Shown: positions 18,109 through 56,024 of the stretch, one piece after another
How positions within the stretch are numbered: the stretch's first letter is position 1
Layout of the letters: each line of letters starts with the position of its first letter
Source: Ostrea edulis
Taxonomy: Eukaryota
Length of the DNA: 64,000 nucleotides
Assembly: GCF_947568905.1 (NCBI RefSeq)
Contig: NC_079168.1
Location: 33,728,001 to 33,792,000 of the forward strand
Reading direction: 5' to 3'
Notes under the pieces: generated by a model
Told to the model about the DNA's origin: nothing
The model's input: the letters and a program-made list of their open reading frames with translations, nothing else
Databases searched by the model: none
Made by a program: the position numbers and the translations under genes

Positions 18109-19799
18109 AATATTCAGTTTGCTGCATTTTCAACATGCAATCATATCTGCTAATAATCTCTCACAAGAATTAGTTTCAAAATTATTTCCTCTCTTATATG
18201 AATTGGGTGGATTAATTGATGTATTTCGAATTATGAGTTTAGAAATTGACACAATTCCTGTCATACTAACATGTAAATACGGAACTTTTGGGATGTGCCG
18301 GAACGACCAATTACATTTGACTTTTATACACCACAGTCACGTGATAATAACCAATTGTAGGGCAAAGTTGACATCTATACAAATGGTGTTTCGCTAGCCG
18401 ACGGTCCGTAAAGAGCTATGCACAGTCCTACGATGAAGATCCAAGTCACTACTGGTGCTTAGTACCTAGTTGTAAATTAGATGGAAGGGAAAATGTGCAA
18501 TTTAGACGCGTATCATTGGATGCAAGGCATGAAGTTTTACCGATATCCTAAGGATATTCCCTAGATTTATCTCCCTCGCCAAACCACATAATTCAATCAA
18601 ACGCATTTTCCTATAAAAATGGTTGCAGTGATTCCTTTCTTTCAAAGATCGCATTTAAATGCAGGAATTTGATAGCAATTGAAATATTCCATGCTTGTTT
18701 ATTTACTGTTATTGTAATCCGGAAGTGACATGCCCTACAAATTACGTTCAACGCGCGATAAAAGTCAAAGTGGATCCATATCTCGAAAGTCCCGTATTAG
18801 GAAATGCCCACCAAAATTATGGAGTAGAGTGTGCATGTAGACCGCGATATGAAATTATCATATGCCTGCCAATATGATGTAAAGCAGAATTACATGTAGA
18901 CTGTGATCTGAAATGATAGAAAATGTACGTAATCAGTACAAACATGTTATGTTATGTTGCTTTTACCTGTCCCTCTCGTGACTTAGTAAAGGGTTAAAGT
19001 GCTCCAATCTTAAATTTGTTGTTTCCACGTCAGGTATTTTTATGATAGTTTCTTCTTTTATCATGTTTTTGTTTAAAAGACTAATCTATCAATTGATACG
19101 AGACATTTATCCTTGGCCCCCATGAAAATTCGGGTTTTCCTGCACTGACAACTTCTGACATGTGCGTCGCATGAATTTGACACAGTGTAAAGTTGTGCAC
19201 TCCACAACTGTTGTTGGTATAGGAGCTAGGGTTTCCTGACAGTTGAAAAATGCTGATTTAATGACAAGTAATACTTTATAATGGAATTGATGCTAAAACA
19301 ATGATCAAATTGAAAATAAGTTATTCCAAATTTATAGCAAAAACTTTCATTGATGCGCTGAGTAACTCATCCCATAATCATCATCTGAAAATTATTCCGA
19401 GTCTATGATAATGTGTTATACTGGTATCTTAATTTCATCTTTAAGAAATGGGCTTCTATTGGCTGATAAATATAGACAATGGCTCTTCAGTGCGAAAGCA
19501 ATTCAAAGTTTTTGATCATGATTGAAAACTTCCTCCTTTGAATATTCAGTGCCATCGCGTCCATCTACTGTATCGTAACATGATAAATATAGTGAAGTTC
19601 ATGCACTGCTCTGGTGTAATAGATTCATATCAACATGCAAAATAGTGTACTTCATACAATGTTTTACCAGGTTCTGCACATGAACATCAGTGAAATATAG
19701 TATGTTGCTATAGTTAGCTGGATAAATATCCTTATGTAACCTTGAATAGAAGAAGTTTTCATTCAGATTGCATTATGCAGGTCTTTATTTCTTTTGCAG

Positions 19800-20369
19800 G
19801 TATGATATGCGAAGATGTTGATATTCGTAATGACGTGAATGGATTTGCTGAGTTAGAAAACTGTACTGTGATCGAGGGAAACCTGAAAATTCTTCTTATT
19901 GAAGGGGCTTCACACCAACAGTATGAAAATCTCTACTTCCCTGACCTGGTGGAGATTACAGAATTCTTTCTCTTGTATCGCGTCTATGGATTAAAGAGTT
20001 TGAGAAATATATTTCCCAACTTGTCCATCATTCGTGGACACAAGCTTTTCTTCAACTTTGCTTTGGTGGTGTTTGAGTTGATGGACTTGGAGGAGCTGGG
20101 TTTGATTGGCTTGACTACCATAGAACGAGGTGCAGTTAGGTTTGAAAAGAACCCTATGCTATGTTACATTGATACCATCGATTGGACCAAAATCGCTGTA
20201 GGTGTTCAGGGAATGGGTGAACATTATTTCAAAAGGAACAGAATTGCTAAGGAGTGTGTAGACGTGTGTCCAAGTGGATGTGCCAGTACTCCGATAATCG
20301 CAGCCTCCGGGGAGGTCGGCAAGGATCAGAAGAGATGCTGGACCAGATCACACTGCCAAAAGATGCTCA
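19800..20369 (+). CDS. InR: InR exon: L1 domain and start of Cys-rich region (570 nt, phase 1-1)
   Basis: Acceptor ttcttttgcag, donor gtaagt at 20370. MICEDVDIRNDVNGFAELENCTVIEGNLKILLI...NLSIIRGHKLFFNFALVVFE...CWTRSHCQKML, equivalent to INSR exon 2. Confidence 0.96.
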
Positions 20370-20411
20370 GTAAGTAGACATTTTTATTTTGGGGGCTGAG
20401 AAATATGGTTT

Positions 20412-42033: not shown

Positions 42034-43003
42034 GTAAGACCTTGTTTCCAATGTTTGTCTTAGAGGGGTTGTTGTACCAGACTCTTTATGGGTGTCCTGA
42101 TAAGGAATTTTCTTGGTCATTTTGGGAGGATGCCTTGTAGGCTGTGGATAGTGAAACAAATTGATACCTCTAAAATTGATGGAAAAAATTGGTGAATACT
42201 ATTGCAGAATTGATGATTAAGTATTTCAATTTTCATCAGAGCACCAGGAAGAATTCAATTGAAGGGATTCACTCATTGTCATTTTTAGCTGTGAAGTAAA
42301 TTTAGATATGATAGATATCCAAGATGTGTAGTATATATTACTTTCATTCTCTTCTAGACAAGGTTAATTTCCTAGCATAGTGAAGATAAAATCAATTTGA
42401 TGAAAGATTTTTTTCTGTAATTGACAGAATAAAACAAAAGGTATTAAACAGCAACAGGCACATTGCTGTTACTTAATTTAAACATGTTTTCTCACTTTGT
42501 AATTGGCATTTAAAGAAAAAACATGGTTAAAATATTCTGTGTATTTTCATCCAAATGATAGTTTTATGGCTAATTTGTCAAACGGAGGGAATAAATTAAA
42601 AGAACTTAACAGATAGTGAATCACAGGGTAAATGATTTGGAATTGTCCTTGTTTGCTAATATTTTCACTTCCTTGACGTCCAAAAAACAAAGGAGTGAAA
42701 AGTCCACATGCATGTTACAAGACGTATGTCTGCATCAGACGGAAAGTAAGACTAGAATTACAACCAGTTTAGAATTTCAATGTCATGCAGCCATCTCAAG
42801 TGTTTTTGGACAAAATGTTTTGTATAACCTGTAAATTTCCAAAGAGTTTAAAGCAAATAAACATGTAACAAAGAAAATCAGTACTACATGTAGGTATATA
42901 TAATTGTAACATACTTCTATTTTGCTGAAACCATTAGTGGTATGGATTGAATCTCATGTGATGTTGTATTTGACCAATGTACGTCCTCTTTATGTACATG
43001 CAG

Positions 43004-43130
43004 GCAACCTGAGATGCATAAGTCTCAAGGTTTCGCGTGTGACTTCCAACTTTGCTTTTCTGCTATGGACCAACGTCAAATTTCCAGACCAGCGCAATTT
43101 GCTAAGCTATATTATCGTCTATAAAGAAGC
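43004..43130 (+). CDS. InR: InR FnIII-1 N-terminal exon, copy A (127 nt, phase 1-2); candidate mutually exclusive exon
   Basis: Acceptor tttatgtacatgcag, donor gtaagt. (C)NLRCISLKVSRVTSNFAFLLWTNVKFPDQRNLLSYIIVYKE(A), homologous to INSR CENELLKF...[25 protein letters not shown]. Confidence 0.9.
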
Positions 43131-43353
43131 GTAAGTGGAAAGTGGCAGACACCCCCAATATTTCTAGATCCATCCCCTCACCTTTTGTAGACTGATTTTA
43201 TTGTTACTTCATAGGCTTTTCCGTTTCAGTGATGTATTTTATTAGTGTATGATTGCCCCACCTTTTTATTCACCTGTGAGCTGTAGCTGTACAGTATATA
43301 TGTTTGCATGATGACCAAAGCTTATGTATGACCCCCGCTGTATTTCCACACAG

Positions 43354-43480
43354 GCACAGTGATGGCTCTGAACCTGACCGTAGTTAAAATAGCAGCACGG
43401 ATTGCTTTCCTTCGCTGGGATAACTTCAAAACTTCTGATCCACGGCAATTACTAAGCTATGTTATCAACTGGAAGGAAGC
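43354..43480 (+). CDS. InR: InR FnIII-1 N-terminal exon, copy B (127 nt, phase 1-2); candidate mutually exclusive exon
   Basis: Acceptor tatttccacacag, donor gtaagt. (C)TVMALNLTVVKIAARIAFLRWDNFKTSDPRQLLSYVINWKE(A); open frame, aligns ungapped to copy A. Confidence 0.9.
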
Positions 43481-45412
43481 GTAAGTAGATGGAACCTTGT
43501 TATAAGGCTGGATAAATCATGATGTGCAAGCTTATTGGATTAAAGTCATGTTTTAAGTCGGATAAAATTTGCATGTTTAAGATTGTAACCTACGACTGTG
43601 CAGGGTGTTGAACTGATATGTACCTGCAGCTGAAGTTGAACTAGCTAGTTCTCTAGCCTTTCCATGCATATATGTATCATTGCTATGGCCATGGGAATGT
43701 GAAATTATCCCAGATAAAAAGAGATTGCAGATTTTATATTTTATGGATTTTAAAGTGCTTTTTAGTTTAAATCAATTAGGAAGGTTTCATATGGGTTTTT
43801 TTTTTATGTCCATGTATGATAATATTCATCAATTTAGTGTAATTTTTCAGCCCAATTTTACAGCCCAATTTGCATTTTAGGCAGTAGAGATAGAATTTTT
43901 ATTTACCTGTAGACCTCTTCTTATCTTAAATTTTTTAGACAGATTTCCTTTGCTCTGATAACAGTTTTCTCCAATTTCATTGTGAAGCTGATGTATAGAT
44001 TGTAGAGGTGAAGTACACCTGATTGATTTTAAAGATGTTTTTATTTTTTATATGTATATATAGTGTAAAATAATAATGTAAAAAATGTTAAGTTGATGTC
44101 ATTTTAGACAGTGTCACATGCTAGAGTTATGGAAAGTAATTTCATATTCTGCAAGGTCAATACTTAATTGACATTTTCTTCAACAGGTGAAAATAAAACA
44201 CATTGTCAAGTTTTCCAAAATCAAATCTAATGAACATCGAAAGGTCTATTGTGATAGAATTATATTTGTTAGTGTAAATAGGGTACATTTTTTAATGAAA
44301 TGTACCAAAAAATTTTCAGGAGAAAAAAAAAAGATTAGTAAGAAACAGGGGGTGATAAGATAATATATGCAGGATGTGTAAATTGTGAGTTGCCTTATTT
44401 GTTGATTGATTAATGTCAGTATTATATGACTCCGTGTGAAGTCATTCTAGGAGGATTACATCATGTCTACACAGCGACTGGTACAGAAGGGTCTTTAGTG
44501 TGACCCTGATCCATCTAACTGCATGTTGTTGTTATTTTCCTGACATTAGACTCATCATTCAGAGTAATTCGTCTCCAGGGCCCGCGCATTATAGTTTTAT
44601 TACACTAATAATCAGAATGTTTGAGCAATATCTTTACAAAGCTTAAGATAGAAAGTCTGTTTGTTTTGAAGATATAAGATTGCTGTTGGATTTGTGCCAC
44701 ATTTAGTGTAAAAAGGTTGTTGTTACCCTTGTGATGATTTGAAATCCTTCAGAAAGATTATGTAAGAACATATCAGATGAAATGAGTCCCATTCCAGGTA
44801 ATGACAATGAGCAATACACACAGAATAACTGATGGCTGTTTATGTAATGTAAGTGGTATAGTACTGATAGAAATGAATTGTCACCAGTGAGCAGACAGGT
44901 GGTGTATATATTACAATTCTATCAACAGTTACAGTTGGGCAGCAGTTTTCAAGGGCCAGTCTTTTTAGTGGTTAGTGCCCTGGCTATCTGTCATTAGTGA
45001 AACTTCCTAAATATGGAGGCAATGCAAAATAGTATTAACAACTGTGTCCAACTTCTGGTGTTGTTCTGTGTGATGATGAAGGCTGTTCAATTAGCGAGGG
45101 AGGACCAATCGCCAAGGATACATGTAGATTATAAATAAGAAAATGTACAGGAACATAATGATACAACATGCATACTGCAATACAGCATTTATAAATAATC
45201 ACACCTTGTCCGCTAATGTATTTCAGAAGTGATTTATTTCAAGGTGATTTGGCTTTAAGAAACAGGTGGAATGTGTTGGTAGAACTGTAATTCTTTGTCT
45301 GATTGGCTAGAGGGAACAGTAGTTCATGCAATGATTTATTGATATTCTCTCTTGCACAGGAAGTTCCTGAGAGGAATGATGGGTTAAAATCAATCTGTTT
45401 TCTGTTTTGCAG

Positions 45413-45466
45413 ACCATTCAAAAATCTTTCAATCTATGAAGGCAGAGATGCTTGTGATGATGATGT
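45413..45466 (+). CDS. InR: InR exon: FnIII-1 loop with the GRDAC Cys (54 nt, phase 2-2)
   Basis: Acceptor ttctgttttgcag, donor gtaagt. PFKNLSIYEGRDACDDD(V), compare INSR PYQNVTEFDGQDAC. Confidence 0.93.
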
Positions 45467-46417: not shown

Positions 46418-46593
46418 GTGGAATACAAAAGATATCCTGAACAAGATGGAGAGAGATGAGGATCATGTGACTTCGCTGTTGCTGAATCTGAAGCCGTGGA
46501 CGCAGTACGCAGTATACGTACAGACTTACACCACATCCTCAGCCAAATTCGGAGCCATCAGCAATATTGTCTACTTCACTACCCTTCCATACT
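46418..46593 (+). CDS. InR: InR exon: FnIII-1 C-terminal half (176 nt, phase 2-1)
   Basis: Acceptor cctttacactcag, donor gtacgt. WNTKDIL...LLLNLKPWTQYAVYVQTYT...GAISNIVYFTTLPY. Confidence 0.94.
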
Positions 46594-48758: not shown

Positions 48759-49437
48759 TTTATACCCCCCGCAACAAGTTGGGGGGGGGGGTATACTGGA
48801 ATCGGGTTGTCCGTCTGTCTGACCGTCCGTCCGTCTGTAGATGCAATGGTTTCCGGGCTCTAAAGCATTATCCTTTCCACCTACAGTCACCATATCATAT
48901 ATATGGACTACCCATGGGATGAAGATGTTCCCTATCGATTTTGGGGTCAAAAGGTCAAAGGTCAAGCGCATTGGACATCGAAGTAGCAATATGGTTTCTG
49001 GGCTCTAAAGCGTTATCCTTTCCACCTACAGTCACCATATCATACATATGGACTACCCATGGGATGAAGATGTTCCCTATCGATTTTGGGGTCCAAAGGT
49101 CAATCGCACTGGACATCGAAGTAGCAATATGGTTTCCGGGCTCTAAAGCGTTATCCTTTCCACCTACAGTCACCATATCATACATATGGACTACCCATGG
49201 GATGAAGATGTTCCCTATCGATTTTGGGGTCCAAAGGTCACGTGCACTGGACATCAAAGTAGCAATATGGTTTCCATTTAAATTCTTTAATGGCTTTTTT
49301 CATCGCATGGAGATGCTGTGTTCCTAGATACTTTTTGGATCATAATACTGAAGTTTTACCTATTACCAACACCCTTTGGGAGATTGGGGTAAGCGGGGGG
49401 TATTCTTAGTGAGCATTGCTCACAGTACCTCTTGTTT
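48759..49437 (+). mobile_element. Complete HINE-type element with 138-bp internal tandem repeats
   Basis: tttatacccc start, (gtcc/gtct)n tract, about 3 x 138-bp units, ggggtatt subterminal inverted repeat, gtgagcattgctcac hairpin, cttgtt end. Confidence 0.85.
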
Positions 49438-49471
49438 CAACAGCTATGTGATGTTGATAAATGTATTGCAG

Positions 49472-49685
49472 CACTAGACAAATCAAGGGCACAGTCAGAT
49501 GATCTGTATGATGAGGAAGATGAATTTGAACAAGGTCGGGACATGAGTAGAGATTACAACAACAAAACAATTCAAGGAGAATGTGCGTGTCCAAAATCTA
49601 ATGAGGAGGAGGAGGAGGAAAGGAAGGAAAGAGAGATGCAGATTGCTTTTGAGAACTTCTTGCATAACTATGTCTACCTCAAGAG
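49472..49685 (+). CDS. InR: InR exon: insert domain alpha including alphaCT helix (214 nt, phase 1-2)
   Basis: Phase-compatible acceptor is atgtattgcag (49471); donor gtaaat at 49686. LDKSRAQ...GECACPKS...EREMQIAFENFLHNYVYLK(R). The 5' boundary is less certain than the 3'. Confidence 0.88.
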
Positions 49686-50965
49686 GTAAATAACGGCAGC
49701 ATGCTTATGTAGAATTCTTAACACTGACTAGGGAAAAATGGCAGAATTTGGCATTGTGTGACATGTGTAGATAAAAGTTTTCCCAGTCTCTCATTATCCC
49801 TGTATGTATTTACTCTGCGTGAAGTTTGAAGATTGAACTAGATTCAAAATATCTATGTCTTTGATTTAATTAAAGTTTTATTTATATAAACTTTACTAAG
49901 CATTATTCTCGCATTCTAAGTGTTTTTATTTACAATCATAGATTTAAATTGTCTGCCATTTCCTTAGGCGTAATATTGCCAAGAGAATGACTTGTATAAT
50001 CAGGAGAAAATATTACTAATGATTGGTGGGGGAGTTATAGAGCCCAGAGATTTAAATTGCATGGGGATTCGCCAACACTTGGTTTTAGAAATATGTTCAC
50101 GAAAGGAGATTTTTTATGTATGAATTGGAATGTCCATAGAAATGTGTATAGTGAAAATAAAATCAGTTTTCCTCCAGTTATTTTCTGTAAATATTGTAAA
50201 ACACACCGATAGCATGAACTATCAAATTTGCAAGTGTTATGAATTTTTTATCTTAAATGTTTCTTAAATGTTGTTCATTCCGTATTTTTTCTTCTTTCTT
50301 TTTATATTTTACTGGAATTGCTGCATTTAAATGTTATTTGACATTTCTGAGTACTATATATATATATATTATATATATATATGATATAGAAACTCAATCT
50401 TCCAGTTCATATGTCTTTTAAAAGGGGAAACCCGGCCATTATTTAGCATGCAGAAAGGAACATTGTATAGGGTTTTTATTTTACATCAATTTACCTCAAT
50501 TTTCATTGATGTTGTATGAAATCATGGTCATTCTCTCATGTTGAAGGGGGCCACTTGCACAAAACATCAAATACACATATTATTGTCTGAGCCACTTGCA
50601 AGAATATATGTTTCATGTTCGTCCAATAGATATTTTATCACTGCTGTATCACTCATTACATTAAGAAAATGCATCCATCATGCTTAAAAAAAAAAAACCA
50701 ACAAAACATAGAGAACAAAAGAGGGGAGATAATCCTCCCACTGAATTATACCATAAGTTAAGGAGAGTGTAAAACTCTGGGACGCTTATTTTCTAAACTG
50801 ACTAGGGGGGAGGGGGTTGAATGCTTGTTCTAATACTAAAGAATGTGTGTGTTAAGAGTGTTTACGTACCTGTCTGTGTTTTCTCCACTAACAATAATAC
50901 TGCAGGCCTCGCGTTGTATGTCGTTTCTTTTCCTAATGTTACAACTTCTTTGTTATCACATCTAG

Positions 50966-55727: not shown

Positions 55728-55793
55728 GGCAGATTACGGGCCCGGTCCCCCTAAAGGAATGCCGGAAATACCCACAGATTTACCCACAACATC
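55728..55793 (+). CDS. InR: Candidate 66-nt cassette exon, ADYGPGPPKGMPEIPTDLPTT(S)
   Basis: Acceptor ttaatattaccacag, donor tc|gtgagt; GC-rich island in AT-rich intron; 66 nt, phase 2-2, open frame. Confidence 0.6.
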
Positions 55794-56024
55794 GTGAGTT
55801 TGACCACATACCACCAACAATTTAAAGAGTCGGCCAACCATTTTTTGTAGCTAGTATAAAAATGCACCTCTGCCTATAATTGCCATCATCACTAATAATA
55901 TGCATCTTGCAGTATCTAAAAGATAATTTTCATACAAGACTTGCATGTTTTATAACAAGGTTTATCTGATAAATATGATAACACAGATGAACTTTTTTTT
56001 CACACTGATTGATAATGGCCTTTT

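Follow-up and report, generated by a model that had tools for sequence, protein, structure and literature searches.

Invertebrate endocrinology has yet to explain how a single receptor can distinguish among many insulin-like peptides. In vertebrates the problem has been solved by gene duplication and by the exon-11 cassette; molluscs have been reported to carry a single insulin receptor gene (PMC13198591). Two adjacent, homologous exons in the insulin-like peptide receptor gene of the oyster Ostrea edulis, which the initial annotation of this DNA had read as alternatives to one another, raise the question of whether a single gene may supply two hormone-binding surfaces, or whether the second exon is kept for some other reason.

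The window analysed is a stretch of 64,000 nucleotides of the forward strand (NCBI RefSeq assembly GCF_947568905.1, contig NC_079168.1, positions 33,728,001 to 33,792,000), identical to GCA_947568905.1, OX387708.1, and it contains part of this gene. All positions given here are those of the window, and are obtained by subtracting 4226 from positions in the retrieved O. edulis locus. An L1/CR exon (19799-20371), L2 exons, FnIII exons and the alphaCT motif FENFLHNYVY (49393-49686) are visible, the kinase part of the gene lying past the end of the window. The L1/CR exon matches mollusc receptors, as do the CR and L2 exons, and the exons in the window match O. edulis RefSeq isoform X1 at 100%. The Pfam domains on record for the gene product are Recep_L_domain, Furin-like, Recep_L_domain and PK_Tyr_Ser-Thr, and its residues 440-660 align to human IGF1R/IR structures with an E value of about 1e-41. 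Judged by these sequence features, the gene has the predicted architecture of an insulin receptor family member (L1-CR-L2-FnIII x3-TM-tyrosine kinase). Elsewhere in the window, at 34576-36243 in the long intron that follows the Cys-rich exon, open frames are repeated and a ...TYTVSTMMKEGG... unit recurs in them; this is probably a repeat, tandem or dispersed.

The region of interest runs from exon 6 to exon 9, and all its features, exonic and intronic, are given on the + strand. The 3' part of exon 6 (41820-42033, 100% match to isoform X1) encodes the end of L2 and a linker; it closes with ...STNGDQMP and the first base of a Cys codon at the donor T/GTAAGA (the slash marks the border), so that the following intron is of phase 1. 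Exon 7A (43004-43130) is an unannotated 127-nt duplicate, covering the first half of FnIII-1 (human IR 468-510), with an open frame and the borders CAG/GC...GC/GTAAGT. An intron of 223 nt (43131-43353) separates it from exon 7B (43354-43480), the annotated copy, also 127 nt long, whose 42 residues are all identical to those of RefSeq O. edulis isoforms X1-X5. Exon 8 (45413-45466; 54 nt, PFKNLSIYEGRDACDDDV), the common acceptor for either copy, matches isoform X1 at 100% in an exact spliced reconstruction, and exon 9 (46418-46593; 176 nt), which encodes the remainder of FnIII-1, is delimited by the sole AG/GT combination that reproduces this isoform. The ends of the two flanking exons, at 42033 for exon 6 and at 45413 for exon 8 (APFKNLSIYEGRD), were confirmed.

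The description of the pair in the initial annotation (two 127-nt exons, 223 nt apart, with CAG acceptors, gtaagt donors and the same phases) proved correct in every respect. The acceptors read ...gcag/GC for A and ...acag/GC for B, and both donors read AGC/gtaagt; both copies are entered in phase 1 and left in phase 2, each has one open frame, and they align without gaps, with 17 of 41 residues and 70 of 127 bases identical (55% in DNA). Identity by codon position is 24, 27 and 15 of 41, indicating that third positions are saturated. Both copies carry usable splice sites, their strength being judged by consensus only, and these are conserved in orthologues. Being homologous, adjacent, of equal length and of equal phases, the two exons form a tandem duplication within an insulin receptor gene, as had been proposed.

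The reading frame imposes a choice between them. In mRNAs rebuilt with exons 6, 8 and 9, inclusion of B alone yields the RefSeq protein and inclusion of A alone an in-frame read-through. The earlier claim that including or skipping both breaks the frame also stands: the A+B mRNA meets a stop after 10 codons of B, and the mRNA lacking both after 25 codons. Single inclusion, of A or of B, is thus the sole productive outcome by frame. With its 223 nt, the A-B intron exceeds the length at which steric exclusion would work, and the donors of both exons are of the ordinary GTAAGT type. Mutual exclusivity would then operate through the frame, the early stop in mRNAs with both copies or neither presumably leading to nonsense-mediated decay.

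Comparison loci were retrieved from S. echinata, C. virginica, Pinctada imbricata and Mytilus galloprovincialis, and a second Ostrea species entered the set through a genomic ORF matched in a protein search with the exon A frame (see below); M. gigas genomic contigs, retrieved via a downstream exon, stop short of exon 7. The locus of the second Ostrea-like species is represented by two independent contigs that are 99.9% alike (Logan SRR35385998; JGI metagenome 3300045951) and 72-90% identical to O. edulis in introns. Since one of the two contigs comes from a metagenome (3300045951), that sample contains oyster DNA.

Four oysters, representing three genera, have exon A in the same position: O. 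edulis, the second Ostrea species, S. echinata and C. virginica. In all four it is 127 nt long, has the borders CAG/GC...GC/GTAAGT, is open, and lies 223-272 nt upstream of B; the stops or frameshifts that might have betrayed a decaying copy are absent from the four orthologues, which show no indel, while the adjoining conserved intron blocks do carry indels. When the three genera are aligned between exons 6 and 8, three-way identity is 0.1-0.25 in introns and 0.6-0.88 in exon A, with exon B at the same level as A, and conservation falls sharply just upstream of A's acceptor, in the manner of a true exon border. The two Ostrea species are identical at 72% of positions in ordinary intron, 97.6% in exon A (3 changes in 127 positions), 93.7% in exon B and 89.5% in the A-B intron.

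An HMM built from 42 distinct non-oyster segments matched every oyster locus exactly twice, and the Pinctada and Mytilus loci once each. The single copy in the latter two places the duplication in the oyster lineage (Ostreidae) and not in molluscs at large. In a tree of the 42-aa segments, in which the first residues of three outgroup sequences are approximate, the A sequences are monophyletic, as are the oyster B sequences, and A sits on a long stem branch, the one feature drawn on here; the attachment point of A was not recovered in this tree. The proposal of an old duplication with both copies kept by selection is supported by the conservation of exon A across the three genera. Exon 7 would have been duplicated in tandem in the Ostreidae lineage after its split from pearl oysters, and kept since. 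That oysters have retained exon A for so long suggests that it probably gives a second form of the receptor.

Every homologue recovered has a B-like segment, which identifies B as the standard copy; its protein sequence in O. edulis is 93% identical to those of Saccostrea and Crassostrea. No A-type segment was present among about 30 oyster proteins spanning the exon (RefSeq isoforms and Logan full-length transcripts), from O. edulis, C. virginica, M. gigas, C. angulata, S. echinata and S. cucullata; two O. edulis Logan transcripts are 3' halves ending short of exon 7, and fall outside this comparison. In the 90% clusters covering O. edulis, C. virginica, M. gigas/C. angulata, Saccostrea, Mytilus, Pinctada, scallops and ark shells, the isoforms are all of B type. 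When the exon A frame was used as a query against 5.8 billion predicted proteins, restricted to those of 41-129 aa, the sole match was a genomic ORF from another Ostrea species.

Differences among the O. edulis RefSeq isoforms are confined to a 5-aa insert, a 22-aa cassette and the N-terminus. X1-X4 are the four combinations of the insert (HKQDG) and the Pro/Thr-rich cassette just after alphaCT, and in X5 the first 43 residues are missing; the cassette matches 55729-55794 at 100%, and the insert precedes it in the protein. The annotation pipeline therefore catches small optional exons in this gene, yet not exon A, which is unannotated in six oyster genomes. Exon 7A probably replaces 7B in a minority of cells or stages.

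The sequence of exon A bears the imprint of the family. Against the HMM of non-oyster sequences it scores 45-58 bits, where B reaches about 80 and shuffled sequences no more than 10.6, and it keeps the family-invariant residues L473, L475, W489, D496, R498, L500, L501, Y503, Y507, K508 and E509 (human IR numbering). Pfam gave no match for the half-domain encoded by either copy, and hence no discrimination between them. Replacements among A orthologues are conservative: the probability of obtaining no stop together with a BLOSUM sum at least as high as that observed is 0.003-0.013 per pair under random substitution, the pairs not being independent. Divergence between A and B amounts to a dN of 0.54-0.65 and a dS of 1.6-2.5, the latter saturated.

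Within oysters, the two copies have evolved differently. The dN/dS calculated per copy, a check that had been suggested, is 0.11-0.20 for B, with a dS of 0.4-0.7; it gave little codon-level signature for A, at 0.6-0.76 with a low dS of about 0.25. Variable sites at first, second and third codon positions number 7, 3 and 16 in B, where variation is concentrated at third positions, and 10, 12 and 8 in A, which shows no codon periodicity within oysters. Bases 47-127 of exon A are almost invariant at all codon positions, and the amino-acid changes among A orthologues are no fewer than random substitution gives. The variable positions of A show no more than a tendency to coincide with those of the family (P=0.06). 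Low dS with raised dN/dS is commonly described for alternative exons of minor forms; it also fits an exon kept for a role at the RNA level. The faint codon-level signature of A in oysters leaves room for a regulatory, frameshifting role.

On balance, we consider it probable that exon A is a real, rarely used, mutually exclusive coding exon. The alternative that survives best, unlikely but deserving serious attention, is that it acts as a 'poison' exon: included together with B, it would shift the frame, bring a stop 10 codons into B and send the mRNA to nonsense-mediated decay, tuning the level of the receptor, and its open frame and its resemblance to B would then be remnants that nucleotide-level constraint has frozen. 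The early stop of the A+B mRNA is what such an exon requires; the third positions of A are conserved like the first and second, its dS is lower than that of B, bases 47-127 hardly vary and the flanking intron is strongly conserved; and the lack of a productive A isoform in the annotation of six species is to be expected if A-containing mRNAs are degraded. However, a frameshifting exon needs no open frame, no exact length of 127 nt and no family-invariant residues, all of which are kept in four species. Moreover, the replacements are conservative beyond chance, and A has no indels although neighbouring conserved intron blocks have them.

It is decidedly improbable that exon A is an unspliced relic, conserved because it now controls B, or the gene, from within the intron, for instance by enhancing or silencing splicing or by enhancing transcription. 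The absence of transcript evidence for A in our searches and its want of codon periodicity would agree with this, and, as the intron at 43190-43353 is conserved too, A could be part of a larger non-coding block. Nevertheless, AG and GTAAGT at the exact borders, a polypyrimidine tract, the length of 127 nt and the open frame are kept in four species, conservation drops just upstream of A's acceptor as it does at a true exon border, and there is neither an Rfam match nor significant RNA pairing. Finally, an assembly artefact or collapsed haplotypes are excluded: O. edulis, S. echinata and C. virginica, each assembled independently, all have the same pair, as do two independent contigs from another Ostrea species, and the copies are only 55% identical in DNA.

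If exon A is a mutually exclusive coding exon, conserved elements in the intron between them probably decide whether A or B is used. Three- and four-species alignments reveal conserved blocks in the A-B intron at 43131-43156, 43209-43227, 43235-43261 and 43296-43353, the whole of 43190-43353 being conserved. A candidate site for Rbfox/Fox-1, the recognition motif TGCATG (UGCAUG in RNA; 43305-43310), lies 175 nt downstream of A's donor and 44 nt upstream of B's acceptor; it is invariant in four oysters, but sits inside a wholly conserved block, so that conservation does not single out the motif itself. UGCAUG acts as a repressor upstream of exons and as an enhancer downstream of them, and conserved flanking intron that includes UGCAUG is a usual mark of regulated alternative exons (PMC2777236). 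Given this position rule, a motif downstream of A and upstream of B would enhance A and repress B, and we infer a possible Rbfox-type switch, which would tip splicing from B towards A in the presence of an Rbfox protein.

A close parallel is provided by egl-15, the FGFR of C. elegans, in which the choice between exons 5A and 5B confers specificity for FGF ligands and is set by Fox-1/ASD-1 acting on UGCAUG in the intron upstream of the repressed exon (PMC2777236); the conserved UGCAUG of oysters is likewise upstream of exon B. Together with the IIIb/IIIc exons of vertebrate FGFR2, egl-15 5A/5B resembles the oyster pair in consisting of tandem homologous exons in the ligand-binding ectodomain of a receptor tyrosine kinase. 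In contrast, these exons encode part of an Ig domain, whereas the oyster pair belongs to FnIII-1 of an insulin receptor and is known here from genomic exons and B-only isoforms.

Conserved sequence is also present outside the A-B intron. A fully conserved 9-nt island, TGCAAGCTT (43525-43533, three-species alignment), stands in the otherwise diverged intron downstream of B. In all three genera, base pairing is possible, over 6-7 bp only, between the UGCAA of this island and the UUGCA found in the UGCAUG region upstream of B. Directly upstream of the constitutive exon 8, a block of 75 nt (45337-45412) has an exon-like three-way identity of 0.57-0.85; it contains an acceptor-like CACAG and internal self-complementarity. 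In addition, conserved AGCTTATGT (43319-43327) is complementary, with G-U pairs, to the GCGTAAGT donor of both A and B (43128-43136 and 43478-43486). RNAalifold pairs AGCTTATGT with A's donor with no covariation, and the match may be due to chance or may reflect B's branch-site region.

Other signs of RNA structure were few. Of the duplexes between conserved blocks, the sole one above shuffles, and weakly so, joins 43196-43230 with 45337-45412 (z -2.0/-3.1/-0.9); the energies of the others were mostly no better than those of shuffles, as were those for pairing of 43303-43335 with exons A and B (z -0.1 to -1.6). One earlier duplex fold took whole introns as a single duplex and is uninformative. 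The helices that RNAalifold gave, for the intron as well as for the entire A-B unit, had almost no covariation, and a search of Rfam with 42800-43700 gave no match. These duplexes and helices bear on docking-site/selector pairing of Dscam type, in which conserved, covarying pairings between an intronic docking site and selectors next to each exon would compete.

What would a receptor carrying exon A look like? In a PDB search with the 41-aa peptides, A matched IGF1R 470-499 weakly (E 2.8) and B had no match, for which reason a longer query was used for the structure alignment. The oyster segment aligns without gaps to human IGF1R 458-500, which corresponds to IR 468-510 by table offsets; the IR numbers given to single residues presume an offset of +10. 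Human IR 468-510 holds the site-1b residues Pro495, Phe497 and Arg498, and seven of the 14 listed site-2 residues (Tyr477, Arg479, Ser481, Asp483, Lys484, Leu486 and Arg488), which bears out the earlier statement that this segment carries a site-1 loop and residues of site 2; Asp496, Arg498 and Asp499 contact alphaCT (PMC6721835). In the fly receptor, DILP5 is bound at the side surface of FnIII-1 (site 2') and on the loop equivalent to human Asp496/Arg498 (site 1b'), and the authors suggest that an FnIII-1 loop may discriminate among DILPs (PMC10560217).

At the site-2 positions 477, 479, 481, 483, 484, 486 and 488, exon B encodes V, K, A, R, I, F and R, and exon A encodes V, R or G, T, N or T, F, F and L, so that A lacks two basic residues and is more hydrophobic there. 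The loop 494-499 reads F-P-D-Q/R-R-N in A, where it is conserved among orthologues, and T/S-S-D-P/A-R-Q in B. The sequon NLT at 474-476, common in the family, is present in B (N-L-T at 43371-43379) and absent from A, which has S-L-K/R in its place (43021-43029) in all four orthologues and no N-glycosylation sequon elsewhere in them. Differences between A and B are not enriched at contact positions, affecting 8 of 12 of these and 16 of 29 others. The two Ostrea species have an extra Cys in exon A (43015-43017), four residues past the conserved Cys whose codon is split between exons 6 and 7; in Saccostrea and Crassostrea this position is occupied by His.

The second receptor predicted from exon A would accordingly differ only in strands A-C and the B-C loop of FnIII-1. 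It would lack the NLT sequon, present a less basic and more hydrophobic site-2 face (R/G479, N/T483, F484 and L488 in place of K479, R483, I484 and R488), and carry FPDQRN in place of (T/S)SD(P/A)RQ in the loop of site 1b that contacts alphaCT. With its site-2 face, loop and sequon changed in this way, isoform A could bind or respond to oyster insulin-like peptides differently. A more specific proposal, which we put forward as a tentative possibility, is that one gene makes two hormone-binding variants by a cell-specific choice of Rbfox type, one with a basic, glycosylated face (B) and one with a hydrophobic, unglycosylated face (A), each serving different peptides.

Alternative splicing that alters the ligand preference of an insulin receptor is already known from exon 11 of human INSR (IR-A/IR-B). 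That exon is a 36-nt cassette after alphaCT; it is not a duplicated exon and does not touch FnIII-1. At the corresponding place oysters have their own optional exons, of 5 and 22 aa, and the A/B pair is a separate event. Receptor gene duplication, as in vertebrate IR/IGF1R/IRR and in the two InR genes of some insects, likewise provides more than one receptor surface for insulin-like peptides, but does so with whole genes, whereas the oyster duplication concerns 127 nt of the hormone-binding region inside the single molluscan gene (PMC13198591). The oyster exons also resemble the tandem duplicated exon substitution events described in human, which involve homologous neighbours of the same length and phase, ancient and conserved (PMC9741552). 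In most of these human events both isoforms are well expressed, whereas the oyster isoforms found are B only; INSR, IGF1R and FGFR receive no mention in the main text of that study. Tandem mutually exclusive exons are already known in receptor ectodomains (FGFR2, egl-15). For insulin receptors, our literature search found no report of mutually exclusive or duplicated exons in any of them, in keeping with the initial annotation, whose author knew of no such switch in vertebrate INSR/IGF1R or fly InR.

Current oyster annotations miss an exon that appears to be under selection as strong as that on its annotated neighbour. Were exon A a frameshifting regulatory exon, a duplicated coding exon would have been reused as a brake on expression. 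If instead it gives two receptor variants, it would be the first case known of a switch by splicing in the ligand sites of FnIII-1 (site 2 and site 1b) in any insulin receptor. Such a twin exon, spanning all of site 1b and half of site 2, would then be a natural experiment on both sites, and one of relevance to farmed oysters, where growth control matters.
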